From: Selaginella moellendorffii
Lineage: Eukaryota > Plantae > Lycopodiophyta
NCBI RefSeq assembly: GCF_000143415.4
Contig: NW_003314330.1
Span: 186,001 to 250,000 of the forward strand
Direction: 5' to 3'
Length of the DNA: 64,000 nucleotides
Shown here: piece after piece, positions 6,696 to 38,384 of the stretch
Position numbering within the stretch: position 1 is the stretch's first letter
Layout of the letters: each line of letters starts with the position of its first letter
Program-made: the position numbers and the translations under genes
The notes under the pieces: model-generated
What the model saw: only the letters and a program-made list of their open reading frames with translations
Database searches by the model: none
Told to the model about the DNA's origin: nothing

Positions 6696-7497
6696 ATGAT
6701 CCCCACCAGCCGCCCAAGAGCCCGACGTCTCTGTATGGTGTGCATCGCTCCAGGGCCTCGATCCATCTCCATGCGCGACATGGGCACGGAGATGACCCCA
6801 ATCGCGAGCCAGGAGCCGTCAAGAACAGTGACGCGGATGCGCACTCCAATCATGACCAGCCCGGGCGTCTCGCCGGGGCGATTGCGGCCAATCCCTCCAC
6901 CGCCGCCGCCGCTGCCGCCGCCACAGGCAACCACGCCCACCATGCCACCGAATTACCGCTCCACTGGCACCGACGCCTCTCCTCCTCCGCCGCTCCCTCC
7001 GGTCGAGCAGCTCACATCGATTCCAGCGCTTCCAGCGACCCCGGGTGGAGCGACGATCCACACCACCAGGAACACTACCAGGCACGAGATCTTGGTGCTT
7101 GGCACGCAGGGGCAAGAGTAGCATCGCGGCGTGGGCGACGCGCGAGGAGGAAGAGAACGATGCGCCTCAAGGTGGTGATCCAGCAGCAGCAGCAGCAAAA
7201 TCAAACCGTTGACTATCTTAGACCGGTCGTTGACCTGGACGAGGTGAGGCGGACCATGGTTGAAAGCCGCGCGACCGCGGAGGAGGAGGCCGAGCACGCC
7301 AAGTGCATGGCGAGGTAAGCGATAGAGTTCTTTTCTTCTTGTTTGATCGATTCAGTTCTAAAGCTTCCGTTTTTCTTGTCTTTGCGATCGATTTATCGAT
7401 GCAAACAAAAAGGTATGAGCACGAGGAAGCTAAGATTTTGGCGTGGGAGAATCACCAGAAGGCCAAGGCCGAGGCAGAATTGAGACGAATGGAGGTA
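6696..7497 (+). pseudogene. remorin (group 6-like) gene fragment, frameshifted and truncated
   Basis: RSISMRDMGTEMTPIASQEPSRT and TRHEILVLGTQ, then in another frame ESRATAEEEAEHAKCMAR / YEHEEAKILAWENHQKAKAEAELRRME (remorin C-terminal domain) across a GT-AG intron (~7314-7412). 5' part and last exon not found. Confidence 0.8.
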
Positions 7498-10400
7498 AGC
7501 TGTCGCTCGCTCCCTGCTCTATGTTTATATGTTCTTTAGCTCTTTATCGTCAAGTCTAGCTTTCCACCTAGGAGTGGTTTTAGCGATCTCCGCAATAGAA
7601 TAGAATCATGAGCGTACGTCTTGGAATCCAAAGCGTACAGCACCTGTGTTGAACTTTACATCCTTCCAAATCCCTGCCAGGTTCTCTGCTTGTTTATCTC
7701 GTTTGTGTGAGATCTTTTCCTTCTCTTCTTTTTTGTTTGTCTGCTGCTGCGCTGCTACTGATTGATTCCTCACTTAACGAATGGGAGTAAATGCAGCAGG
7801 TGAAAATGGAATAGAATAGAACGTGAGGTGACAACTCTGGTTTTAATCCGTGACCGGTCAGAGTAGTCAGCGTCGGTCCAGTCCCAGTCCACAGAGAGAG
7901 AGAGAGAGAAGAGGAGCAAGTTCTTGTTGATGGTAATGTGTTTTTTCCTTGATTCAATCACTTCGTTCATTGCAAGCTTTTCTCTAAACATTAGCTTGAT
8001 TCTCAACAAGATCATCTATAACTTGTTATGGATTGGATTGTAGATCTTTCAAGTTTTGTTTTTTTTTATTTTTCTTTGCTTTCGCAATGTGTTGGCACAA
8101 TGAACTCCAAAGATTCTGACTGGCTTTCTGGAGTAGGATCTAGTTCTGTTTCCAAAGCCTTGTTTTTTAATCCTAGATAATTTTTGTGGCAGTGGAGATC
8201 GTAGTGTTGCACCTCTCTCACATTCATTTCTCATATAGAATCATCAATTAACATGAGGCTCATCTCCACAGTCACAGCACATGATTTTCAGTGATGGAAT
8301 TTTTCCAGTTCCATTCCTTCATTTAAAAATTTCATGGTTTTTATATTATTTAGTTTTTTTTTCTTTATCTTATGCTACATTCCCAGTTTCAGCTGACCAT
8401 ACTGGTCAAATTATCAATCTAAAACAATTATGGGATAAAGTGTCAAAATGTAAATCAAGAAAATCATGACTAAACCATTGTATTGCAACTCTAAGCTTGA
8501 AAAATTGCTAACCCTTTAGTTTAAAATTATCTTTACATTGTTTAAAATTTCAAATTAGTGGGATATACTGTTGTCTAGATTGTGGATTTAGAGTTTTTGG
8601 AATATAGTCAAGGAATTTAAATAAATGCATATATATTGGTTATTAATGTTTTTCACTATTTCCTGGTCACTAAACAAAAGGGCCATTATTTTTCCTTTTC
8701 AAGATCCATGATTTTAAAATGACATTTTGAAACACCACAGCTCAATGTGAGTCTTGTGAGTACTCCCATTATATTCCACCACTAAAATACCCCAATTGTG
8801 TAGTTAGAGTAAGTTTATGATGAATTATGCAAGGTATTTAAGTAGGTAGTGCCACTCATACTTGAATGAAAAGCATTAATCATTTAATCTCCCAAAGGAG
8901 TTACAATTGACATTTGAACACTTCATTAAATCATTCCATTTATTTATGCATGTTCACTTTAACATTAAACTCCATGTTGTCACTCACTAGATGGGTGTAA
9001 TATTTTTTAATCACACTACAAACATTGTATAAGGAAAAATCTTGTTTATCCATTTGCAGTCAACTGTGGAGTGATCTAGATAGAATTTTTTCCAAGCTTG
9101 ATAATTGAATGGCTCAACCAAAAAATTGTATCAACTGTAAATCAATTTCTCTACAAAACCTTTTCACTTTGATTGGAAAGTTCCTAATCTCTCTTGCAAA
9201 TCCCATCTCCTCCACTATTTGAAATGGATTATTATTAACAGTATAGTAAAGAGAGTGTGGGTGACAATTTTAGTGAAATTAGTTTAGCCAGGAAATGCTA
9301 TTAAAATGAGTTTGAGTGACATTGCATTGTCACAAAGAAAATCACCACATGTTTTGGTGATTTTGATAAGTTACATGGAGAAAATTGTGTTCTGTAGCAA
9401 GGAAAATATTCCAATGGTTCCTCACAAAGTTCTTCAAATTGTAACATTGAGAGAGAGTGTGAAAGTTTGGAGCCTATAATTTAAATCTAGGTTATGAGAA
9501 AAATCATGTGAATATCAAATTTTGAAATATTAAGGTTATGGCAAAATTGATAGTTTCACAACTCTTTATACATTATATAGATAAAAATGTTCTAAAGGGC
9601 ACTTTTTGTTCTAATAATTTAGATATTTATTATATGCTATAATAAAGATGTTTGTTAGGACATAAAATAAAATGTTTTGAATCTTGTAACTTCATTCTAC
9701 AATCTTTTCCTTTCCATGGCTTTGGATCCATGTGGCATCAAGGTTGGTTCTTGTGGCTGGCATTCCACTCGAGGGGACACTTGACATGGCTGATACTTTT
9801 TTCCATCCACGTACATCGATCCCATCACGTTAAACAGCTCTTGCTCTGTTCGTCTGATCATACAAGAACTCTAGTGAGCTTTGGAATGAAAGAGATTTCC
9901 TTACATATTTTTCCCTTCTCGCCAGAAGATCGTTCCAAATAGTAGAGCGCATATTGTAGTGAAGAAGTAGCGAACCACGTTGTAATGAGGATTCTTCCAA
10001 TAAGAACGATATTGCTTCCAGAAGCAAGCCTTGCATTGGATATAGAATGACTGAGAGTATTTGGTTGGAAAGTGGAGGTCGCTCGAGTCTGGCATTGGCT
10101 TGCTCAGTCTCTCCACAAGAGCATCGTTTTGCCTGGTGATAAAGCTGGAATCAAAACCATATCCAGAGAAGTCGTGACTTACTTGTACAGAGAAGATTGT
10201 TCGTAGTACTTTGCGAAATCGATTCCAAGTCTGACTTCGACCTCCTCAGCAGTGACATCGAGCATCCAGGTTGCTGGGTTACTTCCATCTTCAATAGGTG
10301 GAACACCTTCCACGGCCTGAGAAAAACACGAAACATGTATCATTACATATGATACCCAGCGTTTCATTAACGTACCTGGAAGAATTCTATAAGGTGGTGG

Positions 10401-11176
10401 GAGTGTCTACCGAGAGGTCCTGCATAGATCACTTGACCACCTCGTTTCATCAATAATAGCTGTGAAATCCAACCATGAACTCCCGCAATATCAGAGATGT
10501 ATGATATTTATATACCTCGTCAAAAGACTCAAATATGTCGATGCTAGGCTGGTGAATGGTGCATACCACTGTTCTTCCCGTGTCCATAGTGTTACGAACA
10601 GTTCTCATCACAATGGCTGCGGCACGAGCGTCAAGTCCCGAAGTTGGCTCGTCCATAAAAATGATGGAAGGATTCGAAACAAGCTCCACGGCAATAGTCA
10701 GCCTCTTCCTTTGCTCCACCGAGAGTCCACTCACTCCAGGGAGACCAACGAGAGCGTTTCTGAGAGGCGTGAGTTCCACAAGAGACATCACCTCCTTCAC
10801 AAACATCTGTTATAACAAAACGAAATCGAAGACGCAAGCTTTTAGAACAAGGAGAGAGCTAACAAGTTTCGCAAGGATTACCGTACCAGTCTCGTTTGTT
10901 TATCAACTTCTTTCGGAAGCCGCAACCATGACGAGTAAATGAGAGATTCTTCAACTGTCACATTTGGAGAATGGATATCAGTCTGCTCGCAGTAGCCGGA
11001 GATTCGAGCAAAAGTGTCTTACGACCAGCAAGAACATCCATTAGAGTCGTCTTCCCCGCTCCACTTACGCCAACTAGTACTGTGAGAACTCCAGGCCTGA
11101 AAGCCCTGCTCACCTCCTTGAGAAGCTGAAGCCTGTCCAGAGTTTCTCCTTGTGCTTTCATCTCCTGCGAAGTTAC

Positions 11177-11265
11177 TGAGACAAATCGGGATCAAAGCGC
11201 ACCGCGCTAGCGGACAGAACAGGAAAACCCTAATGGACACGTGGCGAGGGGTGTGTCATGTAACA
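11177..11265 (-). repeat. copia 3' LTR (89 bp)
   Basis: Direct repeat of 15399-15487. Confidence 0.95.
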
Positions 11266-14018
11266 CTCCCCCCCAAACCGAAGCCACTCACCAAACCAAA
11301 TCTGTCACGTAGGAGCTGAAACTGATGTGGCCCCAACGGCTTAGTGAGAAGATCGGCTGGCATATCCTGTGTCCCGAGATGTTGGACGGCGAGGGTGCCA
11401 CCGTCAACCAACTCACGCACGTAGTGAAATTGGACTTCAATGTGCTTCGAGCGGGCATGGTGGACGGGGTTCTTGGACATGGCAATGCTGCTTCGGTTGT
11501 CACACCAAGAAGTAGTGGGGCCAGCTTGTGCACATCCCAGCTCAGCAAGTAACCCTCGAGCCCAGACCACGTCCCTGCTACCAGTAGTGAGTGCGATGTA
11601 CTCTGCTTCTGCACTAGAAAGGGCCACCACAGATTGTCGCTTGGAGGCCCACGTGATGGCACCTCCTAAGAAGGAAAGGCAAATGCCAGAAGTCGAGCGA
11701 TGACCTTTGTTGTTGGCAAAACTAGCATCCGTGTAGCATGCTAATGATGCATCACCCCCTGAATAAGCAATGCCATAGTCCATAGTTCCCCGAAGGTATC
11801 TTACGATACGCTTGGCAGCTTGCCAATGTATGGTGGTTGGTGATGTGTTGTACTGACTCAAAGCAATAGTCGCATATGTGATGTCGGGGCGAGTCATCAG
11901 GGCCAAATATGTGAGGCAACCAATGAGATGCCGATAGGGAGTCCTAGTGGGTAGAGGCTCACCAAATTGCTCAACTGTGAGGTCGATAGCACCAACGACC
12001 ATTGGGGTCTTGACGGGGTGGCAATCACGCATACCAAACTGATCCAGCAAGACTTCGACTTTACGTCGTTGGCTAAGCATGTAACCACCAGAATCAGGGT
12101 CACGTGTGACTTCAAAGCCAAGAAAGTAGGAGACATGGCCAAGGTCCTTCATCTGGAATTGCTGGCTGAGGGCATCTTTCAGAGCAGCAATGGCATCGTT
12201 GTCATCACCCATGATGAGCAAATCATCAACGTAGAGGGCCACAATAACCATGCACTCAGCATGACCATTGACATACACATTGTGATCAGCATGACAACGA
12301 CGAAAGCCTTGAGCACGTAGGGTGGCATCAAATTTTTGATACCAAATACGGGAGCTCTGTTTTAAGCCATACAAAGCTTTCCGCAATTGCCATATAGGGC
12401 CACCAGGGGCAACATCGTCCTCAAAACCAGGAGGTATATGCATATAGATGTCCTCTTGCAAATCCCCATTCAGAAATGCAGTTTTGACATCCATATGGTG
12501 GACTGGCCATTTGCGAGCAGCCGCAAGGGCAAAAAGAGTACGAAGGCTGGCCATTTTTACAACCGGTGAGAATGTTTCATCGTAGTCAAGGCCATGGACT
12601 TGGCGAAAACCGCGAATAACCAACCGTGCCTTATAACGTACAACCTGGCCATCTTTCCCATACTTTTTGGAAAAAATCCATTTTGGATCCAAAACACGTC
12701 GTCCCGGTGGCGCTGAATCAACTGGAACATAAGTTCCATTAGCCCGAATGGAAGAAACTTCTTCCGCAATAGCTTCCATCCAAGATGAAGCCTCAGGTCC
12801 TGAGATGGCCTCATCACAGGTCATGGGGATGCCGATGTCAACAAGGCCACAAAAGTCATCAAGCTCTGCAGCATCTGCTTCAGCATTTTCCCGGACTTTT
12901 AACGAGGGCCGACGTTCCCGGGGGTGATCAAGAACTGGCATCGGATCAGGCATGCCACGACGTCGACAAGGTGGTGGAGGTGTCGGAGGCCTGTCCTCAA
13001 CTAGAGGAGCATCAGCTGGTTCAAGCATGTCCAGAAGTGGAGGATTCCCCAATGGAATCTCTGGTGGCAACTCATGAAGAGGATCTTGAGGCGGAGGCAA
13101 GAGTGGACCATCTCCCATAAGTGGGATTAAAGGAACAAGTCGAGTCTCAGCAATGAAAGAAGGATCTTGAAGAGCCTCTGTACGCATGGGAAAGTCGTCT
13201 TCATTGAACATGACATCTGTGCTTACAATAGCCTTGTGAGATGCGAGATCCCACAACTTGTAAGCTTTTCTCCCGATAGTGTCGTCCTGTGCATATCCCA
13301 CGAAGATGAATTTTTTACTCTTGGGATCTAGCTTTTTCCGAAGTTGATCAGGGGTATGTGCGTATGCTGCACAACCGAAGACCCGAAAGTGGGACACATC
13401 AGGAGTAGAACCTGTCCAAAATGCCTCAGGGGTTTTTCCATCCAAAGCAGCCGTGGCAAGGCGATTTTGTACATGCATTGCTGTGGCTATGGCCTCTTGC
13501 CAAAACATCTTGTCAAGATGTGCATCGGCTAACAAAGCACGAGCAGCATTGACAAGAGTACGATTCTTCCTTTTTGCAACACCATTTTGCTGGGGGGTGT
13601 AGCGGGCTGTAGCTTGCAGTCGTATGCCTACATCACGACAGATGCTCCGAAGCTCATTGTTGAGGTATTCACCACCACCATCAACTCGAAGAGCTTTTAT
13701 CTTTCGACCAAGGAGGTTTTCAACGTACGCCTTGTACGTTTGAAAGGCAGCAACTGCATCACTCTTACGCATCAAGAAGTGGATGCATGTTCGACGGCTA
13801 TAGTCATCAATGAATGTGATGAAATATCTTGTGCCATCGTGACTTGGCACGTCCATGGGGCCGCAAAGATCAGAATGGACTAAGTCCAGAAGTCCAAGTG
13901 CTCGATGCTTACTCGGTGAGAAATTCCGGCGGTGATGCTTGCCTAAAACACAAGCTTCACAAAATGTAGATGGGATACGTCGGAAATCCAATCCAGTAAC
14001 AATATCTTGGGATTTCAT
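11256..14018 (-). CDS. copia pol: integrase, reverse transcriptase, RNase H
   Basis: HSDLCGP, FIDDYSR, QQNGVAKRKNRT, HMDVKTAFLNG, LYGLKQ, LYVDD, SSAEAEY, KHIEV, ADLLTK. In frame with the upstream gag-PR ORF after a single TAG. Confidence 0.93.
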   Translation of the reverse strand: MKSQDIVTGLDFRRIPSTFCEACVLGKHHRRNFSPSKHRALGLLDLVHSDLCGPMDVPSHDGTRYFITFIDDYSRRTCIHFLMRKSDAVAAFQTYKAYVENLLGRKIKALRVDGGGEYLNNELRSICRDVGIRLQATARYTPQQNGVAKRKNRTLVNAARALLADAHLDKMFWQEAIATAMHVQNRLATAALDGKTPEAFWTGSTPDVSHFRVFGCAAYAHTPDQLRKKLDPKSKKFIFVGYAQDDTIGRKAYKLWDLASHKAIVSTDVMFNEDDFPMRTEALQDPSFIAETRLVPLIPLMGDGPLLPPPQDPLHELPPEIPLGNPPLLDMLEPADAPLVEDRPPTPPPPCRRRGMPDPMPVLDHPRERRPSLKVRENAEADAAELDDFCGLVDIGIPMTCDEAISGPEASSWMEAIAEEVSSIRANGTYVPVDSAPPGRRVLDPKWIFSKKYGKDGQVVRYKARLVIRGFRQVHGLDYDETFSPVVKMASLRTLFALAAARKWPVHHMDVKTAFLNGDLQEDIYMHIPPGFEDDVAPGGPIWQLRKALYGLKQSSRIWYQKFDATLRAQGFRRCHADHNVYVNGHAECMVIVALYVDDLLIMGDDNDAIAALKDALSQQFQMKDLGHVSYFLGFEVTRDPDSGGYMLSQRRKVEVLLDQFGMRDCHPVKTPMVVGAIDLTVEQFGEPLPTRTPYRHLIGCLTYLALMTRPDITYATIALSQYNTSPTTIHWQAAKRIVRYLRGTMDYGIAYSGGDASLACYTDASFANNKGHRSTSGICLSFLGGAITWASKRQSVVALSSAEAEYIALTTGSRDVVWARGLLAELGCAQAGPTTSWCDNRSSIAMSKNPVHHARSKHIEVQFHYVRELVDGGTLAVQHLGTQDMPADLLTKPLGPHQFQLLRDRFGLVSGFGLGGSVT

Positions 14019-15374
14019 CTATTGAAGAGATTGGTAATGAACATGACCGAGTCTTTTATGCCAAAGCTCCGCACGAGAATCTGCCTCCATAGTCTGAAAG
14101 GCCTGAACTGGGTCGACAGCAGTAATCTCATACAAGTCCCCAATGCGTGACCCACGAAGCAACTGTGTACCAAGCATATGAAAGTCGCTAGAGTCAACTA
14201 AAGAGACTCCTTTTGCATCAAAGACTACCACCGCATTTTGATCACATATCTTAGCGACGGACATTAAGTTTCGTCGTAGGGTGGAAACATGCATGGCACC
14301 ATCAAAGGCCATGGTCCTCCCATGATCGAGTGAGAGCCGGAATTGCCCGATGCCGTCCACAGGGATGGTGGTATTGTCACCTAAATGAACACCACGTTTT
14401 CCAATGCTCGGCTGATAACACTCAAAAAGACTCTTCTTATTGCTCATAAGATTAGTACAACCAGAGTCTAAGAGCCACCGGCTTGGTGCAGCAATTGCCT
14501 CTGTGTTGTAGAGCTCCTCAACAGCCTCATTTGCAATAGCAATTCCATCACGCTCAAGCAAATTAGCTTTCGCCAACGTAGCTAGTCGCTTGACAGGCTT
14601 GGGAGCAGGGCAATCTCGAGCCCAGTGGCCCATCTCCAAGCAGCGAGCACACTGATTCTTAGCAAGTCTGGGCTTGGCACGCCCAGATGCCACGGAATTT
14701 TGCCCTTTCTGGGCATTTGCAGCTGCATGCGGTTTTGCCACCTGGGCATCACCAGAAGCCTGCGAAGCATACATAGCCTGTGGCATTTCAGCTCTCTCGC
14801 TTCGCATGGCCTCAATGTTGCGAAGACTCCTCACGGCATCTGCCCAAGTCATCCCTGGTTGGAGAAGCAGGCTCTCAACTGCATTCTTCCAGCTCGCTGG
14901 CAAGGACCTGTAGAGCCGCAGCCTTTGCTGCTCATCCGTGAGACAGTGCTTCGCCCCAGCAGCTGCAAGTTGTGTGAAGAAGCCCTGGAGCTTGGCAGTG
15001 TGAGTCTGGATACTGCCATTTTCCTCTAGCCTCAAGGAATCCATTTGTGAATGGATGTTGAAGACATCCATTTCACTCTTGGTGCCATAAGTGTCACTCA
15101 GCCACTTCCAAAGCTCTGCCGCAGTGGACTTTGGAATCGATGGGGCAGCAAAGAGAACATTTGAGGACAAGCACATCGCAATACTCCCTCTAGCCTTGGA
15201 ATCCCGAAGGTTCCAATCACGCACCTCAGCAGCACTAGAGCCTGGAGCCAGTGATGACTCTGTCCCATCTACAATCCCCAACAAACCATGAAACAAGAGA
15301 TAGGATTCAAGATGGATCTTGAATCCCTCAAACCCTTCTCCATCAAACTCGCAGATGGATGGCTTTCCTTCCAT
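14019..15374 (-). CDS. copia gag, zinc knuckle, aspartic protease, GAG-pre-integrase
   Basis: CARCLEMGHWARDC knuckle, WLLDSGCT protease motif, LWHKRLGH. Confidence 0.92.
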   Translation of the reverse strand: MEGKPSICEFDGEGFEGFKIHLESYLLFHGLLGIVDGTESSLAPGSSAAEVRDWNLRDSKARGSIAMCLSSNVLFAAPSIPKSTAAELWKWLSDTYGTKSEMDVFNIHSQMDSLRLEENGSIQTHTAKLQGFFTQLAAAGAKHCLTDEQQRLRLYRSLPASWKNAVESLLLQPGMTWADAVRSLRNIEAMRSERAEMPQAMYASQASGDAQVAKPHAAANAQKGQNSVASGRAKPRLAKNQCARCLEMGHWARDCPAPKPVKRLATLAKANLLERDGIAIANEAVEELYNTEAIAAPSRWLLDSGCTNLMSNKKSLFECYQPSIGKRGVHLGDNTTIPVDGIGQFRLSLDHGRTMAFDGAMHVSTLRRNLMSVAKICDQNAVVVFDAKGVSLVDSSDFHMLGTQLLRGSRIGDLYEITAVDPVQAFQTMEADSRAELWHKRLGHVHYQSLQ

Positions 15375-15386
15375 AGCGCTATCCCA

Positions 15387-15398
15387 GCTCCGATACCA
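15387..15398 (-). promoter_or_regulatory. primer binding site (tRNA-iMet)
   Basis: TGGTATCGGAGC immediately inside the 5' LTR. Confidence 0.9.
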
Positions 15399-15487
15399 TG
15401 AGACAAATCGGGATCAAAGTGCACCGCGCTAGCGGACAGAACAGGAAAACCCTAATGGACACGTGGCGAGGGGTGTGTCATGTAACA
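15399..15487 (-). repeat. copia 5' LTR (89 bp)
   Basis: Direct repeat of 11177-11265; adjacent PBS. Confidence 0.95.
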
Positions 15488-18400
15488 GTTACAAAACCCA
15501 AGCCTGTCAGTGAGGATTTTAAACGTGAAGCTAAAACAGACCTTTGGCATGTCAACAAAGTAGCTGACTTTGTGGAAAGCTATGGACAGTGGCTGGAAAG
15601 GTAGCACCATGCCTGTTTTTACATCTCCAGATTCGGGGTCCCCTGAGGAAATAATGGCAGACTTTGAATATGGAAATCAATTTGAGAACAATACCATTTG
15701 AATGAAAACAAAATGATTTTCTAGAACTCTGGGATGACTTCTCCTGAGAGCTAGAGTTCACAGCTTGTCCGGTCTTGGTTTTGTGTTTCTCGTTCAATGT
15801 TTCCTCAGAAAGAATCACCGATGGTTTTCCAAAAGCTGTGAAACCAGAAGTTGAGCTACTTGAAAGTAAAGGAGTATAATCTTACGCTTGAGAACCGTTA
15901 ACGCTATAGTGAAAAAGATGTTAAAGAAAATCGCAAACCCGACAAGGGCGCCAATTCCAATCCAAAACCAAGAAGGATCTGGAAAAATCCCTCGAGCCTT
16001 GAGCACAATTGTACCGACACTTTCGGTGGAATTTGGTGCAAGCTGCAGTAGAAATTCATAGAGTAAGAGATTAAAAAAGAAAAAATGGCGAAAATTTTAC
16101 CACTCGCCATCTTGGGGCCGTGAACTCATTAACGGCAATAGCGTTTTGTGCGTACATCAGAGGCGATGACCAATAAGCCCAGATCCACCACGGATGAATA
16201 GAATCTATACCAAACTTTAGTGTCCATAAGCAAAAAAAAGGTTTGTTTTCAACTTACTTCGAGAGATGACAAAACCACCAAGAGTGAAGACGAGTACCAG
16301 CGAAAAGGAACCAAAAGTATTTGCAACGAGCATAGTTCTTCCCAAAGATGCCATGAAACGAAATCCAGACATTGCCATGTTGTGAAGCGTGAAGAGCAGC
16401 AAAAACTGGCGAAAGAATCTACATGTTTTCTACCACTCAGGGAAAGATAATGCTCATGAGGAAACATAAGTTCTTACCTTCCAACCTCTGGAGCATAGCC
16501 GATGACCCAGTAAGTTAGGAACACCCAAATCGCAGTCTCAAGCAGCGAGAAGGGCATTCTCATGATCCAAACCGGAACGGAAAATGCCCAAGACGGATAG
16601 AGCAAGTTCTGTTGCTTGTAAAATATTGGTAACCTGTTAATGGTCATTGCGAGCTCCGCAAAACCATTAAACGTGATGACAACGATCGAGTAGAAAAGAG
16701 AAGAAACCAGAATAGTTCCGTCTGTGACAGAAATGTGATTCTGCGTTCGCAAGAACACGGTCATACTCACGGTCGCCATCACCAAAATCTGCAAGGAAGA
16801 ACAATCATAGAATCATAGTTAGAACTTCGCTTAAAGAAAAAGAGAATAGTTCACACAAACCTGTGTGGTTTTAAAAGCATAGATGAAAGCATTGCGCTTC
16901 ATGAGAAGAACTTCTTTCGCAAAGCATGCTTGAAAGATGTTCCAGCTGGTTGACCCATATTGCTTTGTCACCAAAGCAGCAGGATTGCTCCTGGACTTGT
17001 CGTACGGAACTTTGAGTTCTCTCGCTAGATCCTGGCCAATATAATGCCTTGAGAAAGCTAGCGCGAAGTCTTCCACAGAAACATATCTATGAGATCTCGT
17101 TCCTTTCTTTTTCTATGAATTTACCTCTTGGAGAAAGTCTGCCACGCCTTTTCTTTCAGGACACTTGAATCCCAGCAAAGTAAAGAAGTCGAGAACCATG
17201 TTGCAGGGTCCTTGAAAGATTATACGCCCCTCGACAAGCAATATAAGATCGTCGAAGAGGTTGTAAACCTCTGGAGCCGGCTGGAGAAGCGAGACAATGA
17301 TGGTGTAGTCGGCATTGTGCACAGTTTGCCTCAAATGCTTGACAATTTGGTACGTAGTAGAGCTGTCTAGGCCTGTCGAGATCTCATCCATGAACAAAGC
17401 TTTTGCTGGTCCAACAAGAACTTCTCCTGACAGAGTAAATAAAGTCAGTACTGCTTAGAACTGTCTTGAGAGACTTTTACTTACCTGTTGTAAGTCGTTT
17501 CTTCTGCCCACCAGAAATTCCGCGACGCATTTGATCGCCAACTAGCGTGTCAGCACATATGTCGAGTCCTAAAACCTGTGGCCCCGGACATAAAACTTAA
17601 AAGTAAATGTGACGACATAGTATATAGATCAGGAACTTTACCTTGAGAACGTAGTCCGTCCGAATGTTTCGTTCCTGTCCTTCCAAAGCCAAAGCCTGAG
17701 TCACAAAAAATAATTAATAAATCCAACATAGAAGAACTATAATCACGATAGCTCTTGCCTTCATAAAAGCGTCAATATCAGGGTCTGGTTTGATTCCAGC
17801 AGCCTTCTCACGTCTACAGAGCTCCGCAAGCATATCTAAAGAGCAACCAAAGAGCTCGTCAGTGTCAAGGTCGTCAAACATCAATCTTACCATATCGTGA
17901 TCCAACACCTTGACACCGACAAGAAAAGTTCAGGGTCTCTCGGGCAGTAAGCTCCGGGGTGTGAAGGTCAGTCTGGCTGATATATCCCGACGTCCTGTGT
18001 GGCACAAACTCGCTAAACTCGCATCCATTGTATGTAACGTTCCCTGAGACCTGAAAAGCTTGTGTGTCCAACAAATATCCAAAAGAACAAAAAAAAATAG
18101 TATTACCCGGAGGTCGTGATCTAACTTTCCGCATAGTGCCTTTAAGAAAGTTGTCTTTCCCGAACCGGGAGGTCCCAGAAGTAAAGTCAGCCTGGAAAAC
18201 AATCCAGAAAAATGGGAAGAAGAAATGTTTCAACAAGGATTGCTTGATCTAGTTAGCACCTGCACGGCTTGATGATGCCAGTAACGTTGTCAAGGATGGT
18301 GAGCACTCGTTTCTTAGTAGGAGATAGCCGAAGCGATCCAAAGAGCTCCTGGAATTCCGGCCAAGAACAAAGATATCAAACACAGAGTCAACGTGGAGAA

Positions 18401-18802
18401 GGAAGAGCAGAGAAAAGATAGAGAAAGAGGAGTTCTCAGCTTATCATACTTCAATCGTGTTGATGGTGTAGTTGTAAAGCGTGGGGAGAGCCCGGCCTCC
18501 AACATAAACATCAGCATCAACATGTAAATCCTGAAAGCGAACTTCGATCTTGGGTAGATCGATCTCCACTCTAGAACAAAACAAAAAACCAAAAAAATGG
18601 AAAGAAAGAAATGAGAAACATCCAAGCACATCGTAGGCTCACGATGAAAACGGGAAATGGGAGAGAGTCTCCAAGATCAAGAGAGAAGGATTTTCCAAGC
18701 AGGCAAGAAAAGGGAGAAAGAATGGATCTTTCCATCCCTTACTTGTCAATGCGATCCCGCAGCTTCCGCAAGAATCGCTCGTTGTCCAGCGCCACTTGCT
18801 CC

Positions 18803-19108
18803 GATCGATCGTGGTTCTTTCCCTCCATGGCGGAGCTTGGGGGATCTAGCGGCGTGGTGGAGGGCGGGGGGAGGATTTCCTTGACCGAGAGTACGTGGGA
18901 GGAGAGGGTGTTTGGGCGGCCGTCGAGCGATTCGCAGCGGGCCGAGGATGAGGTGACGCTCAAGTGGATCGCGCTCCAGAAGCTGTCGAGCATGGATCGG
19001 ATCGCGCTCCAGAAGCTGTCGAGCATGGATCGAATGCGCACGGCGCTGGTCCGGGGCAATGGCGGGGAGAAGGATTTCGAGGCGGTCGCCTACAAGCAGC
19101 GGATTATG
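18803..19108 (+). pseudogene. inverted 5' part of PDR exon 1
   Basis: The + strand from ATG 18827 reads MAELGGSSG...EDEVTLKWIALQKLSSMDR...AYKQRIM, a PDR N-terminus. Its continuation EQVALDNERFLRKLRDRIDK is on the - strand from ~18801. Contains a 33-bp tandem duplication. Confidence 0.85.
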
Positions 19109-19515
19109 GCGATCGACGGGCCCGAAACATTTCGAGGCCGATCTAAGAGAAATCCGCGACTATCCGTATCCACGATCGGCCAGCATTTGGAATCGCGAAC
19201 AAAGGAGAGAAGCGCGGGTCGATTTGAAATTTAATAATTTTACTAGGAGTACAAATTTAGGCTCGCATACCTTGGCACTTTAGCAAAAGGACCCTGTTAG
19301 TGACGCAAGTAATATCATGATTTTTGTACGGCCATGTCATATGACCCAAACGAGAAAAGTAAGAGATAAAGCGACGCAACGTGGCATCCGGCCAGCCATG
19401 CATTGTGGCACGGCAAATAATATAAAGTAGCAGAAATCTAAAAAATGACTGAGGTTCATGACCGATATTTGCTGACATGGCATTTACTTGTCCATCAAAG
19501 GTTTAGTTTTGGTAA

Positions 19516-20283
19516 TTATCTCTTCTGGAAGTTAAAATATCTGATGCTAAAGGCGAAAGTAAGCGCTAGCACCAATACAAACAGTATATGGACAGCAGCA
19601 ACTTCGCCCAATCTATCCTTATGGAAACCAAATCTGTGCTTGATGTAATCTCGCACAATTTGTTGGCCTTTGCCAGGAACATCCATCACTGTTCCTTTGT
19701 CCCCGAGTTGTGAAGTTATGAGACCATTGAGCGTCCACGCAACTGAGTTAGCATAGTAATACCATCTCCACCATATCGGGATTTTCTACACAAACAACAA
19801 AAACGAGATGAAAACTCAATTATAGCAGGAGGCAATCAGCCAACTTACTGGACGCGGGATAAAAAACCCCGAGAAGAAATTCCAAAAACCAAAGAATGCA
19901 AATGAAACCACTGCTGCCAGCTGATAGTTCCGCATGAGAGACATCACCATCATCCCATGGAAGGTGAAGTATAAGAATGTGGAATACATGAAGAAGAAGA
20001 ACCAAAAGAATTTATCTGGCGACCACTCGTATGCGATTGTGGAGTAAACTATGATCAGATAGATCGCAGTTTGGATGAAGACATAAGGAATCTCGATTGC
20101 TACCTGTGGTAACATTGCATAAACCACGAGCTTAGTTTGAATATGTGTGACAAACCTGTGCTAAAGCGTATGGAATTGCTGAATACATCCCTGCTGCCCG
20201 TTCTCGATAGAATACAGTCCTCTCGACACCAACAACAGGTTGAGCTGCGGTGGAGTTGTTAATTCCGAGAAACAGGCAAGCAG
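19516..20283 (-). pseudogene. 3' exons of the PDR transporter, displaced upstream of the gene's 5' end
   Basis: ACLFLGINNSTAAQPVVGVERTVFYRERAAGMYS / VAIEIPY... / IPIWWRWYYYAN...FNFQKR-stop (TAA 19516-19518). Confidence 0.9.
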
Positions 20284-21049
20284 AAGATAAAATAGCGATC
20301 TTCTGTTGGAAGCTTCCAATTGGTTCTTCTTTGTTAGCTCAAAAACGAAAATAAAAACTTGGTGTACAAAGGTGCTGCTCAAAAGAAAGAAGGTAGTAGC
20401 CAGCCAAACTTCATGGCAGAGGTGATTAGTTCATTCCTTGTGCTCAAGCTAACAATAAACTTATTAACCTTGGGTAGTGATTTGACAAGCTAGCAGAAAC
20501 TAAAAAAGTAAAATGAACTAAATATATTAAATTGCCTAGTATAAAATGCCATTTAATATAAATATTTAAAATCAAGGTCTAAAAGAAGAAATAATTTGCT
20601 TCACATTCCAAGTAATTCTTGGTTTACTTACTAGTACTGTTATTCTTATTTATTTATTTAATTAATCAAATAAAAGTTAATGATAAAATTAATCTAAATG
20701 AATAACAACCATTGGATGGTATAATATCCTAGAATATCCAAATATATTCTAGGTATACAGGTACAGTTGGTTCTAAAGGTTTGTTAAAATTAAACTTTTG
20801 ATTATACCTTATTATCAGAAACAAATTATTATCTAACATTTTAATTCACTGACAGGGTGTCGGTGGTAGTTTAGGACTACTGGGATGCTTGCATTGGTGA
20901 CATTAATTGAGATCGTGCAGGACTGTTTGCACATGAAACGGATTGGGCAGCAGGGGTTGCACTTGGTTGCACCACGCTGGGAGATTGTGCTGATGGAAGA
21001 GGCACTATTTCCTGGCCTCTGGAGAATTGGGGATGCCAAGGAAGCGAAT

Positions 21050-22778
21050 AAAAAAGACAAAGGAAGAAGGAAGAGGCATATAGAAGAGAAACGGCACCTC
21101 GGCTTGCCGCAGCATTCCAGATCGCGAGAGAAGATCAATAACGCACTCGTAGTGATCTCCTGTCCAAAGTCCATTTCTATGGAGCCGAAGTTAACGACAC
21201 CATCGAGCAGCAGTCCGGCATGGCTACAAGCCGATAGGACGCTCTTGAAAGTCACGTGGTCGGGATCCACTCCATGGATCTGCATCGCGCTAAACAGCTC
21301 CAGTGCTTCTCCGGCAAGCCCGTTGTCAGCATAGGACGTGATCATTCCAGGAGCCGACCACCTTGTCCGGATTCCTCTCAAAAAGAGCTCGAGAGCGATG
21401 CGGCTCTTCCATAGAGGCTCACCAGTGCACTGGCGAGGAACGCATCTGGCTCCACTCCAGCGGCAACTATATCGTAGTGGATGATCCTGCCGAGCTCAAA
21501 CAAGTGGAGCGTTGTGCACGCGTCGATGGCGGTCGAGAACCTGACCTCGTTGGGAGTTAACCCTTCCAAATCCATGGACTTGAAGAGCTCGAGAGCCTCC
21601 GCCGGATTTCCAAGCTGTGCGTATGCTGCCATCATCGAGTTCCAAGTCACAAGGTTTCACTGCGGCATCTTATCGAAGACGAAGAAGCGAGCGTCCAGCG
21701 GTTCTGAGCGTAGAGGCAACGCAGAACCGTCCAGGTGACCACAGTTCTCTCCGGAATCATCGCGAAAAGCAAGCTCGAGTAGGAGGCATCGCTCAGCTCG
21801 GCGCTCATCTCGTTCCACAACACGGAGCTGTGCTGTGGCATCCTTGCGAAGAAGCTATCAGCGAGATCCATTCTTCCAGCCTTGGCATAAGCTCCTAGCA
21901 TGATATTTCCAGAGACTACGTCTCGTCCTGGCGGCATGCTCGCAAACAAGCTCTCGGCTTGAGCTGCTTGGAAGCCAGCAGCATGACGTTCCATGAAACT
22001 ATATCTCGCTCCAGCATGAGCTCAAACATCTGCTACTTTTCCAGCTTTAGCTAGAGCCTGCGTTGCCGAGTTCCACGATTCAGCGAAAAGACTGCTACAT
22101 TGACGTGAATTCCCACACCGGGCATATGCCGAGATCATTAAGTTCCAGGTGATGGTGCTTCGATCTGGCATTTTTTCGAAGTATACCTTTACGCTACCAA
22201 TGTTACCACTGTATACGTAGCCTGATCTTATGGTTGTCCAAGTCAGAGCGTCGTACAACGGCATTCTTTGTAGTAAACGTTTTGCATCCTCAAGTTCTTC
22301 TTTTTGGGTAACCGCTGATAACCTTGCGTTCCATGCTACCACGTCTCGGTATTTGTACCATGAAAGATTGTTTTCCGTCGCTGGTATTTCATTATTTTTC
22401 CCGTATGCTACTATCGTAGTTGTGGAAGAAGAAAGGCTGCTTTCGGGGAGAAGATCAAACAAGTCCCTGGCCTCCTCTAAATGCCCGGCTCTGGCTTTCA
22501 CTGCGATCGTGGTGCTCTAAGTTACCAGCGAGTGCTGAGCCATCTTTCTGAAGATTATATCCACCTATCGCAAGTTCCAGCTGTGAATGTAAGCCGCTAG
22601 TAGAAACTTCCAGCTGCTGTGCAATCGAATCGAAGGCCAGTGTGGCAGCCCCGCATTTGGACGAGGAGGTTGCCCATGTAAGTCTCCCGATGGAAGTCAT
22701 GAGTCTTGAGCTTCTCGTGAGCTTTCTGAGTAGCGCCTTTGTTCTGCTAAGAAGTGCCTCAAAGGAGGCCCTCTCCAT
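21050..22778 (-). pseudogene. PLS-class PPR pseudogene
   Basis: PPR motifs (TWNSMMAAYAQLG, PDHVTFKSVLSACSHAG, TWNLMISAYARCG) spread over several frames; multiple frameshifts. Confidence 0.85.
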
Positions 22779-22855
22779 TAGAAACCATCATTCTTGACTA
22801 AGAGGGCACAAAATTTTCACTATAGTTATCAAACTATTGATGTACAAAACTAAAA

Positions 22856-23490
22856 TTATGGCTTTTGCCACAATAGCAACATTGATTCAGCAGCATAAAC
22901 AGATAAATGCCCAGTGTTTTCAACTACAAGTTGAGTAGGAAATATACAATCAGGTTGTGGCTGGCAATAGATATTTGTGAACCAGAAACCTCTACCTAGA
23001 CTGTCTAGAAGCACCAAATTCCCATCCATTTGGAGTGTGAGCTTGCATCTACTCCTTCCACCAGTGCTGCTAGACCACAAAACCTTCACTTTATTGCAGA
23101 CAACACCATGTTGCAATCCTGCTCCAGTGAGAATTCATGCTGAGCATTACCTGAAACAGGCTTCTCCTCAACATACACAGCAGATCCCCTTGCTCCGAGC
23201 TCTCCACTGACTATGCACGAACCAAAAACGTTACAGTCTTGTTGGTATTCAAGAAAAATAGCTGGATCAAACCTGTGTTGAACACTACGATGGTCTTGAT
23301 CACTTTTGCCAGCAATATGTTTGTGGAGAGTAGAAATTCTAAGAAAATTTAAAGGCAGACCACGAATATAGTACCACACTGAATAATCCATGCCTATTGT
23401 ACCAAGAGCAGCTGCTATATGGCCATATTTGTGACGATGAGCCTCTGTTGCAACTTGTGAGCAAAACTAAGAGCCTGAACAACATACCTT
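22856..23490 (-). pseudogene. bulb-type (GNA/B-lectin) mannose-binding lectin domain gene, degenerate copy
   Basis: SGNAQHEFSLEQDCNMVL...VLWSSSTGG..CKLTLQMDGNLVL with frameshifts; paralogue of 23687-24615. Confidence 0.75.
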
Positions 23491-23686
23491 CGGGCAAATC
23501 ATGTGTAAAGTTAAATGTGTTTAAAAGCCATTTCGGATTTTGTCTTCGTCGTTGACATGATATAAATGCCAAGCAAGGAAAGAAAATCAAAATTTTGAAT
23601 CTCTAAAGTTCATACTTGACTATAGTTTTGACATTTTGGAAATTGATTTGTTTTTACTAATATAATTTTATGTGGACTTAAAAAAC

Positions 23687-24615
23687 TTAAGGCCTATGCC
23701 ACAGGAGTTGTATTGATTCTGCAGCATACAGAGACAAATGCCCGGTATTTTCAACTACAAGTTGAGTTAGAAAGATACAGTTGGGTTGTGGCTGGCAATA
23801 AATGTTTGTGAACCAGAAACCTTCATCTAAACTATCTAAAAGCACCAAATGCCCATCCATTTGTAGCGTGAGCTTGCATCCACTCTTCCCACCCGTATTG
23901 CTCGACCACAAAACCTTCCACTTCATTGCAGACAGCACCATGTTGCAATCTTGCTCCAGCGTGAATTCGTAGCGGCCATTACCTGAAACAAGCTTCTCTC
24001 CAGCATAGAGTTTGCTCCTAGCTCTCCACTGGCCATGCACGAAGCATAAACGTTACAGTCTTCGTTGTAGCTAAGATATAAATCTGGATCAAAGTATGCC
24101 TCACTGCTACCAAGTAGATGATTTTCAGTCGTAAAATTATGCATAGAGTTTAAAGGTGGGTTAGGAAAATGGTACCACACGGAATACTCTATGGCAACCA
24201 CGCTCGAAGTCGCAGATATATGACCATATTTGTAAATTTGAGCCTCCCTAACAATTTGCGAGGCCAGATAGTCGAAGGCTGGTCGTAGAGTTAACCCAGA
24301 CACCATCATTGGGGATGGGCGAAGGCTGCAGCTACCATCAGACTCCCTTGTTAGCAAAGTAAGTTTTGAGAAACAATGGAGCCTACGATTCACGTCTATG
24401 CTGAAAATCCTTTTCCATGTTCTTGGAAAATAGTGTGCCTCTGGACGAACATCTTCATCAATGTGCTGGCGAATACGTGCTTCCAAGCTGTTTACTTGCT
24501 GTAGACCTGCCATGAAGTATGGACGGCTTCGTTCCAGAAAAATGACACATGTGACGCAAATGACACATTGCCAAAGCAACGCTAACACCCTCAACATCAT
24601 CTCTTTCGCTAACAT
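23687..24615 (-). pseudogene. putative secreted protein with C-terminal bulb-type lectin domain, one apparent frameshift near 24020
   Basis: Hydrophobic N-terminus (MMLRVLALLWQCVICVTCVIFL). The lectin domain LYAGEKLVSGNGRYEFTLEQDCNMVL..VLWSSNT..LTLQMDGHLVL lies in a different frame. Confidence 0.75.
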
Positions 24616-24943: not shown

Positions 24944-26413
24944 ATGCCCGCTTTGTCTTGCAATTTTAACTCTCCCCATAATTCGATCATGCTCTCCAGA
25001 TCTCCAGCACCGGTTTCGGGCGATTCTAATCGAAGCAGGAACAAGATGAGAAGCAGCATTGTCGCCGCCGCTCCTGCCGCCGAAGACAGCATCACAAAAG
25101 CGGCTCCGTTGACCAAGCTCGACCTCGTCGACTACCTCGCCTCTGGTTGCAAGCCCAAATCACGCTGGAGAATCGGCACCGAGCACGAGAAATTTGGATT
25201 CAATAAGAGCACGCTCAAGCCACTTGACTACCCCCAAATCTCTCAGCTATTCGAAGCACTCTGTGAAAGATTTAACTGGCAAAAAGAAATGGAAGGTGAC
25301 AAGGTCACAGGTCTTAAGAAGGATGGACAGAGTATTTCCTTGGAACCTGGTGGTCAGCTGGAACTCAGTGGTGCTCCCCTCGAAACTCTCCACGCGACTT
25401 GTGCCGAGCTCAACTCTCACCTCTACGAGGTGAAGGCCGTGAGTGAAGAAATGGGCGTGGGATTCTTTGGGATGGGCTTCCATCCAAAGTGGCCAGTTGA
25501 AGTATTCGACATGATGCCAAAGGGGAGGTTTCAGATCATGAGGAACTACTTGCCCAAAGTTGGGAAGTTTGGCCTTGACACCATGTTCCGGACGTGCACG
25601 GTCCAGGTAAATCTCGACTTTTCATCCGAGGAGGACATGGTGAAAAAGTTTAGAGTTAGCCTGGCCTTGCAACCGGTTGTCACGGCGATCTTTGCAAACT
25701 CGCCATTCACAGAGGGCGCACCGAATGGCTACTTAAGTTACCGGAGTTTGACGTACACGGACATGGACGGGGACAGGACCGGTGATCTTCCATTCGTTTT
25801 CGAAGACGGGTTTTCTTTCGAGAGGTACGTTGACTACGCTCTTGAAGTGCCCATGGTGTTCGTCTACAGGGACGGAAAGCACGTAGATTGTACTGGCCGA
25901 TCTTTCAAAGACTTTCTCCTTGGGAGGCTACCAGAGCTTCCGGGAGAACTCCCAACGCTCAGCGACTGGGAGAATCACATCAACACCATCTATCCCGAGG
26001 TCCGGCTCAAGAAATACTTGGAGATGAGAGGGGCCGACGAGGGGCCGTGGAAGAGGCTGTGTGCTTTGCCGGCTTTGTGGGTGGGACTCTTATACGACGA
26101 AGAAGCTCTGGAGAGTGCTTATCAGTTGATCAAGGATTGGAGTCGGGCCGAGCGAGCGATGCTGAGGCGCGAAGCTCCAAAGCTGGGATTGAAGACACGG
26201 TTTAGGAACGGGACTTTGAAGGACGTAGCACAAGAAGTGTTGAAGCTGGCAAAGGAGGGACTGGAGAGAAGGGGTTACAATGAGGTGAAGTTTCTGGAAG
26301 GTGTTGCTGAGATTGTGGAAACGGGAGTGACTCCAGCGGAGAGGTTGCTAGAGTTGTACAATGGTAAGTGGGACAAATGTGTGGATCCAATGTTCCACGT
26401 GCTAGAGTATTAA
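24944..26413 (+). CDS. GSH1: glutamate-cysteine ligase (plant GSH1/GCL-like), intronless, with a putative plastid transit peptide
   Basis: [71 protein letters not shown]; intact 489-aa ORF; Ser/Arg-rich N-terminus. Confidence 0.95.
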
Positions 26414-35814: not shown

Positions 35815-36225
35815 AGTGTCCGAGATGGACTCGAGTTGGAGTCCGAAGTGGAGTCCGAGATGGACTCGAGTTGGAGTCCGAAGTGGAGTCCGAGATGGAC
35901 CCAAGTTGGAGTCCGAAGTGGAGTCCGAGATGGACCCGAGTTGGAGTCCGAAGTGGAGTCCGAGATGGAGTTCGAGATGGAGTCCGAGGTGGACCTGAGA
36001 TGGACCCGAAATGGAGTCTGAGATGGAGTCTGAGATGGAGTCCGAGGTGGACCCAAGATGGACCCGAGATGGAGTCCGAGATGGAGTCCGAGATGGACCC
36101 GAGATGGAGTCCGAGATGGACCCGAAATGGAGTCCGAGATGGACCCGAGATGGAGTCCGAGATGGACCCGAGATGGAGTCCGAGATGGAGTCCGAGATGG
36201 AGTCCGAAGTCGAGACCGAGACCGG

Positions 36226-36265
<40 letters not shown>

Positions 36266-36319
36266 AAGATCGGGACCGAGAACGAGACCGAGGCCGAGGC
36301 CGAGACCGAGCCCGAGCCC
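35815..36319. repeat. complex satellite of GAGATG/GAGTCC/GACCC units grading into (GAGACC)n
   Basis: Direct reading; equivalent decayed tracts at 35170-35580 and 37518-37720. Confidence 0.9.
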
Positions 36320-36505
36320 GAGTCCGAGTCCGAGTCCGAGTCCGAGTCCGAGTCCGAGTCCGAGTCCGAGTCCGAGTCCGAGTCCGAGTCCGAGTCCGAG
36401 TCCGAGTCCGAGTCCGAGTCCGAGTCCGAGTCCGAGTCCGAGTCCGAGTCCGAGTCCGAGTCCGAGTCCGAGTCCGAGTCCGAGTCCGAGTCCGAGTCCG
36501 AGTCC
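36320..36505. repeat. perfect hexamer array (GAGTCC)31
   Basis: 186 bp of uninterrupted GAGTCC. Confidence 0.97.
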
Positions 36506-38097: not shown

Positions 38098-38384
38098 ATG
38101 CTTTATTTCGTTAAAGTGGAACTTTTCATTATCCCACTTATGGTGTGTGGCCACATGCCATTTTTATAACAACAATAAAAAATTGAAGTTTTAGCTTTAT
38201 AATTTATAAATTAAAAACTTTTCATATGATTTTGTGTTATAATATTGTGAAATATAAAAAATAAATTAAAAAACTGATAGAAATATTAATAAATATTAAT
38301 TAAGTACTAGGAAATGGCATGTGGACACATGCTAATTAATGTCCCACTTTACTGAATAAGTTCCACTTTAACGAAATAAAGCAT
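38098..38384. mobile_element. 287-bp MITE related to the 13.2-kb TIR element
   Basis: TIR ATGCTTTATTTCGTTAAAGTGGAACTT; TSD TTAT (38094-38097, 38385-38388); absent from the paralogous LTR at ~36890; carries two copies of the 22-bp palindrome. Confidence 0.92.

Follow-up and report, generated by a model that had tools for sequence, protein, structure and literature searches.

A circularly permuted, non-functional PDR transporter gene in Selaginella moellendorffii and its possible origin from a gene-sized DNA circle

The window, i.e. the whole 64-kb stretch of DNA that was analysed, harbors a dead and probably additional copy of a full-size ABCG gene of Selaginella moellendorffii, which fits the PDR1/TUR2-like group. 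In this copy, the last fifth of the gene lies ahead of the first four-fifths and both parts are separated by a single exact cut inside an exon. The permutation is exact, the introns are kept, the copy stands isolated, its ends are clean and it carries additional lesions. Since the break lies within an exon and the introns are retained, the underlying event took place on the DNA level, and the copy thus arrived or was rebuilt as DNA and not via RNA. A gene-sized DNA circle that re-enters a chromosome would leave the permutation pattern seen here. As the most likely origin of the copy, to which we assign a probability of roughly 40%, we consider a circle of one gene unit whose ends were joined into the DNA that separates a PPR pseudogene from a remorin gene; the circle itself, where it came from and how the events followed one another are what we infer.

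The permuted gene and its join

The block is composed of the following parts:
19516-20283, minus strand: 3′ part comprising the second membrane domain, ...(A)ACLFLG through ...NFQKR plus stop
20283-20156, 20103-19849 and 19785-19519, minus strand: exon pieces of the 3′ part, followed by the stop codon TAA at 19518-19516
20155-20104 and 19848-19786, minus strand: introns of the 3′ part
19120-19515, minus strand: spacer of 396 bp from the stop to the exon-1 sequence
18827-19119, plus strand: initial 97 codons of exon 1 (MAELGG...RIMAID), in situ inversion with blunt breaks
15542-18826, minus strand: remaining exon 1 (EGKNHDRSEQVALDNERFLRKLRDRIDK), NBD1 and TMD1 up to ...YFVDMPK, with exons collinear with those of relatives
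9810-11164, minus strand: NBD2 and the start of TMD2, up to ...NVMGSMY plus G

All four domains of a full-size ABCG/PDR transporter (TIGR00956; Pfam ABC_trans_N, ABC_tran and ABC2_membrane) are present and collinear with those of family members, the profile positions of TIGR00956 and Pfam agree, and more than 20 short introns are kept according to the exon map. The exons, which were used unspliced and one by one in the protein searches, span residues 6-1482 of the Ginkgo PDR protein Gb_05443 (P0381) consecutively when both the permutation and the inversion are reversed. The stretch 15542-18826 matches Ginkgo residues 95-893, TIGR00956 positions 232-323 and 428-531 as well as Pfam ABC_trans_N and ABC2_membrane, the stretch 9810-11164 matches Ginkgo residues 895-1265 and TIGR00956 positions 877-973 and 1051-1123, and the 3′ part matches Pfam ABC2_membrane positions 59-97, 96-185 and 186-210 and aligns to residues 1267-1482 of Ginkgo P0381 and 1237-1453 of Closterium P0196. 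The domain order is NBD-TMD-NBD-TMD with canonical Walker and signature motifs, which is the order and motif set of the plant full-size ABCG/PDR proteins of the PDR1/TUR2/ABCG40-like group; unlike the members of this group, the copy is permuted, does not work and is disrupted by a stop codon, a frameshift, an inverted piece and a transposable element. The 5′ part shares 69% identity with the Ginkgo protein. When compared to 122 full-length PDRs, the identities of the 5′ and the 3′ part co-vary (r = 0.64) and both peak in the PDR1/TUR2-like group, hence the two parts fit one gene type. The PDB holds no plant PDR structure.

The 5′ part stops at 9810 after ...GSMY and a single G, and the 3′ part runs from 20283, where it starts with CT followed by ACLFLG..., to the TAA at 19518-19516. 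Along the minus strand, the sequences at the two block ends are ...GGA TCG ATG TAC G|tggatgg at 9810 and ...ttatctt|CT GCT TGC CTG TTT CTC GGA at 20283, identical to what the initial annotation had reported. Its claim that the ends join in frame with neither gap nor overlap was likewise borne out, as G and CT form an alanine codon that yields GSMY-A-ACLFLG, and four comparisons with relatives agree. The Pfam ABC2_membrane profile is split at the join between positions 58 and 59: 9904-10116 corresponds to positions 2-42, the 16 residues that end at 9810 to positions 43-58, and 20162-20281 continues from position 59. The TIGR00956 positions follow one another across the join in the order 1051-1123, 1138-1174, 1174-1269 and 1271-1301. 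In the Ginkgo protein P0381, the 5′ part reaches residue 1265, residue 1266 is the split alanine codon and the 3′ part covers residues 1267-1482 plus the stop; in Closterium P0196, the corresponding residues are 1235, 1236 and 1237. The tyrosine is spaced by three residues from the LF.G motif in all 92 of the site-spanning homologous fragments (among 120 retrieved), as it is in the join, and several of the fragments spanning the site read GSMYAACLFLG. The broken exon comprises 9853-9810 and would, if rejoined with 20283-20156, become an exon of 172 nt. A base-exact coincidence of two independent ends has a chance of about 1 in 6000, where exactness at the level of the base presupposes that the donor codon was GCT. 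As about 250,000 windows were scanned, one chance case is conceivable, yet far from expected, and the possibility is not negligible.

The 3′ exons were also said to lie upstream of exon 1 at a distance of about 400 bp. The distance holds, with 396 bp separating the stop from position 19119, but the exon-1 piece that adjoins the spacer is inverted and lies on the plus strand. The spacer displays no coding similarity to PDR proteins and is not repeated elsewhere in the window. It probably comprises the 3′ UTR followed by a little intergenic sequence and, at about 19120-19260, the TATA-like promoter of the gene itself with the 5′ UTR, and any junction that arose by circle closure or within an array would fall between 19120 and 19515.

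Lesions, surroundings and relatives of the copy

The initial annotation had assumed a whole gene within the block. This did not withstand inspection: at least five further lesions are present and no whole working gene remains. An uninterrupted reading frame is not found, since the frame is split at residue 1266, contains a TAG codon and a frameshift and has its first 97 codons inverted. Besides the inverted piece, the lesions are:
18966-19031, plus strand: perfect 33-bp tandem duplication within the inverted piece, two copies with 100% identity, repeating IALQKLSSMDR
17086-17124, minus strand: degenerate stretch interrupted in frame by TAG at 17115-17113, 13 codons compared to 19 in relatives (VTSKKDQQQYW...PYR)
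11015-11018, minus strand: deletion site with about 55 nt lost, where the frames overlap and AAGAC is common to both sides of the join
11172-15492, minus strand: Ty1/copia retrotransposon in a short intron, with Pfam Retrotran_gag_2, rve and RVT_2

The inversion in exon 1 is 293 bp long, and at its edge the sequence CCATGG (18825-18830) provides an ATG on both strands. The plus-strand reading frame of the inverted piece is identical to Ginkgo P0381 at 33 of 79 positions (residues 6-86) and reaches a score of 69 against Malus P0267, compared to a mean of 27.8 (sd 4.6, maximum 51) for 500 shuffled sequences, while the minus-strand frames of 18827-19119 score only at background against PDR. For the degenerate stretch at 17086-17124, which leaves Ginkgo residues 436-454 and Closterium residues 427-445 unmatched, no usable splice that would restore the frame was found. 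The deletion at 11015-11018 removed 17 codons (GGYIEG..ISGYPK.Q) after AGRKT, corresponding to Ginkgo residues 945-961 and Closterium residues 915-931, and shifted the frame. The copia element is young. Its LTRs of 89 bp (15487-15399 and 11265-11177) differ by one base, its target-site duplication GTAAC is intact, its primer site is of the tRNA-iMet type, and gag and pol are open with one in-frame stop between them.

The block is flanked as follows:
about 21100-22780, minus strand: frame-broken PPR pseudogene with Pfam PPR repeats
20284-20832, no strand assigned: upstream flank, AT-rich, downstream of the PPR pseudogene
7600-9809, no strand assigned: downstream flank, AT-rich, beyond the 3′ end of the remorin-like gene
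7303-7536, plus strand: Remorin_C domain of the remorin-like gene (Pfam Remorin_C, E = 2.3e-10)

Using tblastn with five PDR proteins, matches within the 64 kb were confined to 9811-20290, and neither flank nor the spacer showed PDR similarity. Self-BLAST revealed no second PDR copy in the window. The two flanks share no similarity in either orientation and no common repeats, and at the block ends we found no terminal inverted repeats, no target-site duplication and no direct or inverted repeats that connect the ends. The absence of such features together with the unrelated flanks is the pattern expected from blunt end joining. The window contains no runs of N, so both junctions sit in continuous sequence. 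An insertion of the block into the PPR pseudogene itself was rejected, since the PPR homology stops near 21100 and is absent past the block.

Searches for relatives did not bring up a parental gene. By exact look-up, the reading frames across 9810, the inverted exon-1 frame and several exon frames were absent from the protein collection. A word search among proteins of 37-119 aa with the frame across 20283 gave a top match of 80% identity and no near-identical parental fragment, and for the next 3′ exon the top match was 60% identical, and the 3′ fragment was not represented by any short annotated protein. The search of representative proteins returned chiefly fragments and one full-length PDR from Closterium. 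In a profile search, for which an alignment of four long PDRs and nine exons of the window served as the query, no Selaginella protein was among the 120 matches listed, the named ones being from seed plants and Closterium. A protein look-up placed XP_002974231.2 on an allelic contig of 1,997,012 bp, which suggests that the assembly contains two haplotypes.

Origin of the permuted copy

The preferred reading starts from a closed circle of exactly one gene unit, which would have held the gene and about 400 bp with the 3′ flank, the 5′ flank and the promoter. Such a circle may have formed when two tandem PDR copies recombined or when a single gene was excised and its ends were joined. It would then have broken once, in an exon and directly after the first base of an alanine codon, and both blunt ends would have been ligated by non-homologous end joining into a break in the intergenic DNA that has the PPR pseudogene on one side and the remorin gene on the other. 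In the predicted result, the last 216 codons precede the promoter, which in turn precedes the first 1265 codons, with no loss and no repeat. The copy would have been dead on arrival and may later have acquired the 293-bp inversion, the 33-bp duplication, the stop codon, two deletions and the copia insertion, although part of these lesions may predate the move and have been present in the donor. The order of the parts is reversed and amounts to exactly one unit with neither gap nor overlap, and the junctions to the target are free of homology. The earlier proposal of a circle that was opened once and integrated is thus upheld in part: the exact permutation, the event on the DNA level, the isolated position and the clean ends speak for it, but the gene in the block is not whole. 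A more specific reading would see in the copy a fossil, fixed in the germline and exact to the nucleotide, of an extrachromosomal circle the size of a gene. A tandem array of PDR genes would have shed this circle, which was then opened a single time and returned to the genome of the lycophyte; we put this reading forward only tentatively.

The inverted exon-1 piece lies beside the junction, which makes a balanced local reshuffle plausible, a possibility overlooked in the initial annotation. According to this scenario, several double-strand breaks within about 6.6 kb of a native PDR gene freed pieces that were religated in the wrong order and orientation: with Z and Y for the upstream and downstream flank and A, B and C for successive gene segments, Z|5′ flank|A|B|C with 3′ flank|Y would have become Z, C with 3′ flank, 5′ flank, inverted A, B, Y. 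A single event would cover both the exact swap and the inverted piece. The inversion at 18827-19119 directly adjoins the spacer and its ends are likewise blunt and free of loss, which hints at one multi-break event, and every piece of the gene is present exactly once. Moreover, a swap of adjacent segments is equally exact without a donor, and none was found in the protein searches. That none of the short proteins in the collection exceeds 80% identity with the 3′ exons adds little, since the length filter of the search kept full-length relatives out of view. On the other hand, five breaks in a small region would have had to leave zero bases lost at the exon break, and the remaining lesions are clearly independent events, so that the inversion may be independent too. 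On balance, we consider an in situ rearrangement of this kind unlikely.

The initial annotation had named excision from a tandem array as the alternative, and this remains among the readings we weighed. The block would then be a slice of one period or a remnant of a tandem PDR array, either because a linear piece with the 3′ part of a first copy, the spacer and the 5′ part of a second copy was pasted into a break or because a resident array of two copies shed its outer parts. The middle of the block, with the 3′ end, about 400 bp, the promoter and exon 1, does resemble an ordinary tandem-gene junction. However, the matching ends would require either a coincidence, with the chance of about 1 in 6000 given above for independent ends, or cutting of both identical copies at one and the same specific sequence. 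The join has neither overlap nor gap, and no further PDR sequence occurs within 9.8 kb on one side and 43.7 kb on the other side. An array slice or remnant appears still less probable than the in situ rearrangement.

Collapsed tandem units do emerge from assemblies as exact circular permutations, and the two haplotypes suggested by the protein look-up complicate assembling; the block might accordingly be a collapsed unit that was linearised arbitrarily and misjoined to unrelated flanks. Against such an artefact stand the junctions in continuous, N-free sequence, the absence of similarity between the flanks and the gene that could create a false overlap, the lesions unique to the block and the transposable element with its intact target-site duplication, and we regard it as very improbable. 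Three further candidates were rejected: a retrocopy, because more than 20 introns are kept and the break lies inside an exon; a fragment captured by a transposon (Pack-MULE, Helitron or similar), because terminal inverted repeats and a target-site duplication are absent and the latter would appear as an overlap at the join; and the insertion of a transposable element at the break point followed by recombination between elements, because the join lacks an overlap and neither flank is the end of such an element.

Comparison with known systems and implications

Extrachromosomal circles are abundant in plants. To our knowledge, their reintegration in plant germlines is little documented and inherited natural cases are scarce. 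In cattle, the KIT translocations behind colour-sidedness, described by Durkin et al. in 2012, reportedly proceeded by circular intermediates, with a segment of hundreds of kilobases and with source and target characterised. The cattle segments and the PDR copy are both germline-fixed, contain a gene and would be circularly permuted in order relative to their source, but in cattle the gene is functional and a phenotype is present. Circularly permuted proteins can also arise by permutation-by-duplication, where a tandem duplication is followed by the loss of both outer ends and an in-frame fusion is required. The PDR block resembles the intermediate of this route in its arrangement of 3′ part, spacer and 5′ part. 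Whereas the route yields a working permuted protein, a stop codon, 396 bp and a promoter lie between the two PDR parts, and their copy is non-functional.

According to published work, circular DNA intermediates leave as their signature a reversal of order from A-B to B-A with breakpoints that carry microhomology only (Chicote et al. 2020, PMC7450558). For human segmental duplications formed via circles, A-B/C-D becomes B-A/D-C; these duplications are large, their donor loci are known and a replicative mechanism has been proposed (PMC7450558). The PDR copy likewise shows a reversed order of its parts and breakpoints without homology, but differs from the duplications of Chicote et al. 2020 (PMC7450558) in that the unit is a single gene of 6.2 kb (10.5 kb with the copia element) and the break is codon-exact inside an exon.

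As the gene is dead, no functional consequence follows under either origin, be it from a circle or from a gene native to the site. If the gene was native, the locus would be an example of a small-scale balanced rearrangement with multiple breaks. Few footprints of a returning circle can be read from sequence alone, and a gene copy with an exact permutation is among them; if the circle origin held true, as judged by a donor and an empty site, the copy would represent a clean case of tandem defence-gene arrays seeding dispersed copies.

Order of the two parts of the PDR gene

The two parts of the PDR/ABCG transporter gene on the minus strand of block 9810–20283 lie in swapped order, the 5′ part ending at 9810 and the 3′ part running from 20283 to the stop codon at 19518–19516. 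Upon re-reading, the sequence at both block ends matched letter for letter that given in the initial annotation, in which joining the ends yields GSMYAACLFLG in frame. We mapped the gene exon by exon by reference, aligning each exon separately to full-length relatives without a joined model. The best relative in hand is a Ginkgo PDR (P0381, Gb_05443; 1482 residues), with which the 5′ part shares 69% and the 3′ part 58% identity. The exons of the 5′ part are collinear with its residues 6 to 1265, the last base of residue 1265 being located at 9811. Residue 1266 (Ala) corresponds to the split codon, composed of G at 9810 and CT at 20283–20282, and residues 1267–1482 are matched by the 3′ part up to the stop. 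Alignment to a Closterium PDR agrees, the 5′ part ending at its residue 1235, the split codon matching 1236 and the 3′ part starting at 1237. On the Pfam ABC2_membrane profile, positions 2–42 correspond to 9904–10116, which leaves the last 16 residues of the 5′ part for positions 43–58, and the 3′ part covers positions 59–97, 96–185 and 186–210; TIGR00956 positions are likewise consistent with an exact join. Among 120 retrieved homologous fragments, all those spanning the site (92/92) possess three residues between the tyrosine and LF.G, as in the join, and several homologous fragments contain GSMYAACLFLG verbatim. The permutation first proposed from the sequence is real and, as far as can be checked without the donor, exact. 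The broken exon would measure 172 nt if rejoined. Since the break falls mid-exon and the short introns are all kept, the permutation arose at the DNA level.

As a weak test of whether the two parts match different paralogues, we compared both with 122 full-length PDRs. Their identities co-vary across this set (r = 0.64) and are alike highest in the PDR1/TUR2-like group, so that the two parts fit one gene type. Exon-sized queries miss full-length proteins, and a profile search was built to overcome this; no Selaginella protein is among the 120 matches listed in this PDR search.

Exon-1 inversion and further lesions

Exon 1 had been placed beyond a spacer of about 400 bp. The spacer was recovered, with a size of 396 bp (19120–19515), but the adjoining exon-1 piece sits on the opposite strand. 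Plus strand 18827–19119 codes for MAELGG...LKWIALQKLSSMDR...RIMAID, the exon-1 start of a PDR gene, with 33 of 79 residues identical to Ginkgo P0381 residues 6–86. Against the N-terminus of a Malus PDR it scores 69 (shuffles: mean 27.8, sd 4.6, maximum 51), and the minus-strand frames score at background. From 18826 onwards the coding sequence is again on the minus strand, continuing with EGKNHDRSEQVALDNERFLRKLRDRIDK. The plus-strand piece is a 293-bp inversion in place with blunt ends, or 260 bp once a perfect 33-bp tandem duplication inside it (18966–19031) is discounted. The inversion left a CCATGG palindrome at 18825–18830 that provides the gene strand with an ATG in frame (MEGKNHDRSEQ...), and a copy carrying the inversion alone could still make the protein minus its first ~97 residues.

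An in-frame TAG is present at 17115–17113, where the gene has 13 codons compared to 19 residues (VTSKKDQQQYW...PYR) in relatives, and near 11016 the 17 codons GGYIEG..ISGYPK.Q are absent and the frame is shifted. An intron also harbors a transposable element:

15492–11172, minus strand: Ty1/copia element, near-intact and young

Its LTRs are unusually short (89 bp) and one base apart, the target-site duplication is GTAAC and the primer-binding site is of the tRNA-iMet type. Gag and pol are open, with one in-frame stop (14021–14019) parting gag/protease from integrase/RT. Lesions aside, the PDR catalytic motifs are canonical; the copy is fairly young and thoroughly dead.

Surroundings of the block

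Features around the block
7303–7536, plus strand: Remorin_C (Pfam) of a remorin-like gene below the block
about 21100–22780, minus strand: PPR gene above the block, broken into at least five ORFs in different frames, which looks like a pseudogene
22852–24093, minus strand: bulb-type lectin-like ORF, present twice in tandem with 80% identity across about 420 bp; Pfam B_lectin match weak (E = 2e-4, under gathering score)
24944–26413, plus strand: plastid-type glutamate-cysteine ligase, intronless, 489 aa, with a letter-identical NCBI entry
26479–28509, plus strand: intact 676-aa PPR gene
34998–39007: GC-rich (at most 57% GC) nested tandem and dispersed repeats, units ~150–600 bp, 70–86% identical

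The 90%-identity cluster of the ligase includes 455-aa forms (isoform X2 / EFJ24453.1) and XP_002974231.2, an allelic S. moellendorffii copy on a 1,997,012-bp contig that most likely represents the other haplotype.

The remorin-like gene and the PPR pseudogene both point towards the block. As PPR homology ends near 21100 and does not resume past the block, the block does not split the PPR pseudogene. Matches of five PDR proteins by tblastn are confined to 9811–20290 within the window, a relaxed search detected no PDR-like sequence in either flank or the spacer, and self-BLAST revealed no second copy of the block in the window. The flanks show no similarity to each other in either orientation, no terminal repeats and no match to the rest of the window. 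Where the spacer adjoins the inverted ATG end (about 19120–19260), it contains a stretch resembling a TATA box and a leader rich in CT, which we infer to be the native promoter and 5′ UTR of the gene. The GC content of the first 110–150 bp of the flanks is 47% (9700–9809) and 38% (20284–20430), and 29% and 24% farther out. These edges gave no coding or repeat match and may represent either filler DNA or simply UTRs.

Origin of the permutation

An exact permutation implies that the mechanism must couple the two ends. We tentatively favor, with a probability of roughly 0.4, the circle proposed in the initial annotation: a closed circle holding one gene unit would have been opened at a single point and end-joined into a break in intergenic DNA. 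This requires no coincidence and agrees with the isolated position of the block. Reversed order and junctions without homology are the published signature of circular intermediates (PMC7450558), and the PDR block resembles such copies in both respects. As a whole, the circle interpretation is plausible but unproven. Less probable is that a PDR gene already resident at the site was rearranged in a local, balanced reshuffle with multiple breaks; this would account equally well for the exactness and would explain the adjoining exon-1 inversion by one and the same event. Somewhat more doubtful is a piece taken from, or left over from, a tandem array. In that case either the ends would match by a coincidence of ~1 in 6000, or both of two identical copies would have been cut at the same site in a sequence-specific manner, and no array is left in the window. 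Misassembly is improbable, since the sequence is continuous (no N bases in the 64-kb window), no similarity could produce a false overlap and the block bears unique lesions. The PDR block adds a further case, here in a dead gene, to a kind of structural footprint that is already known.
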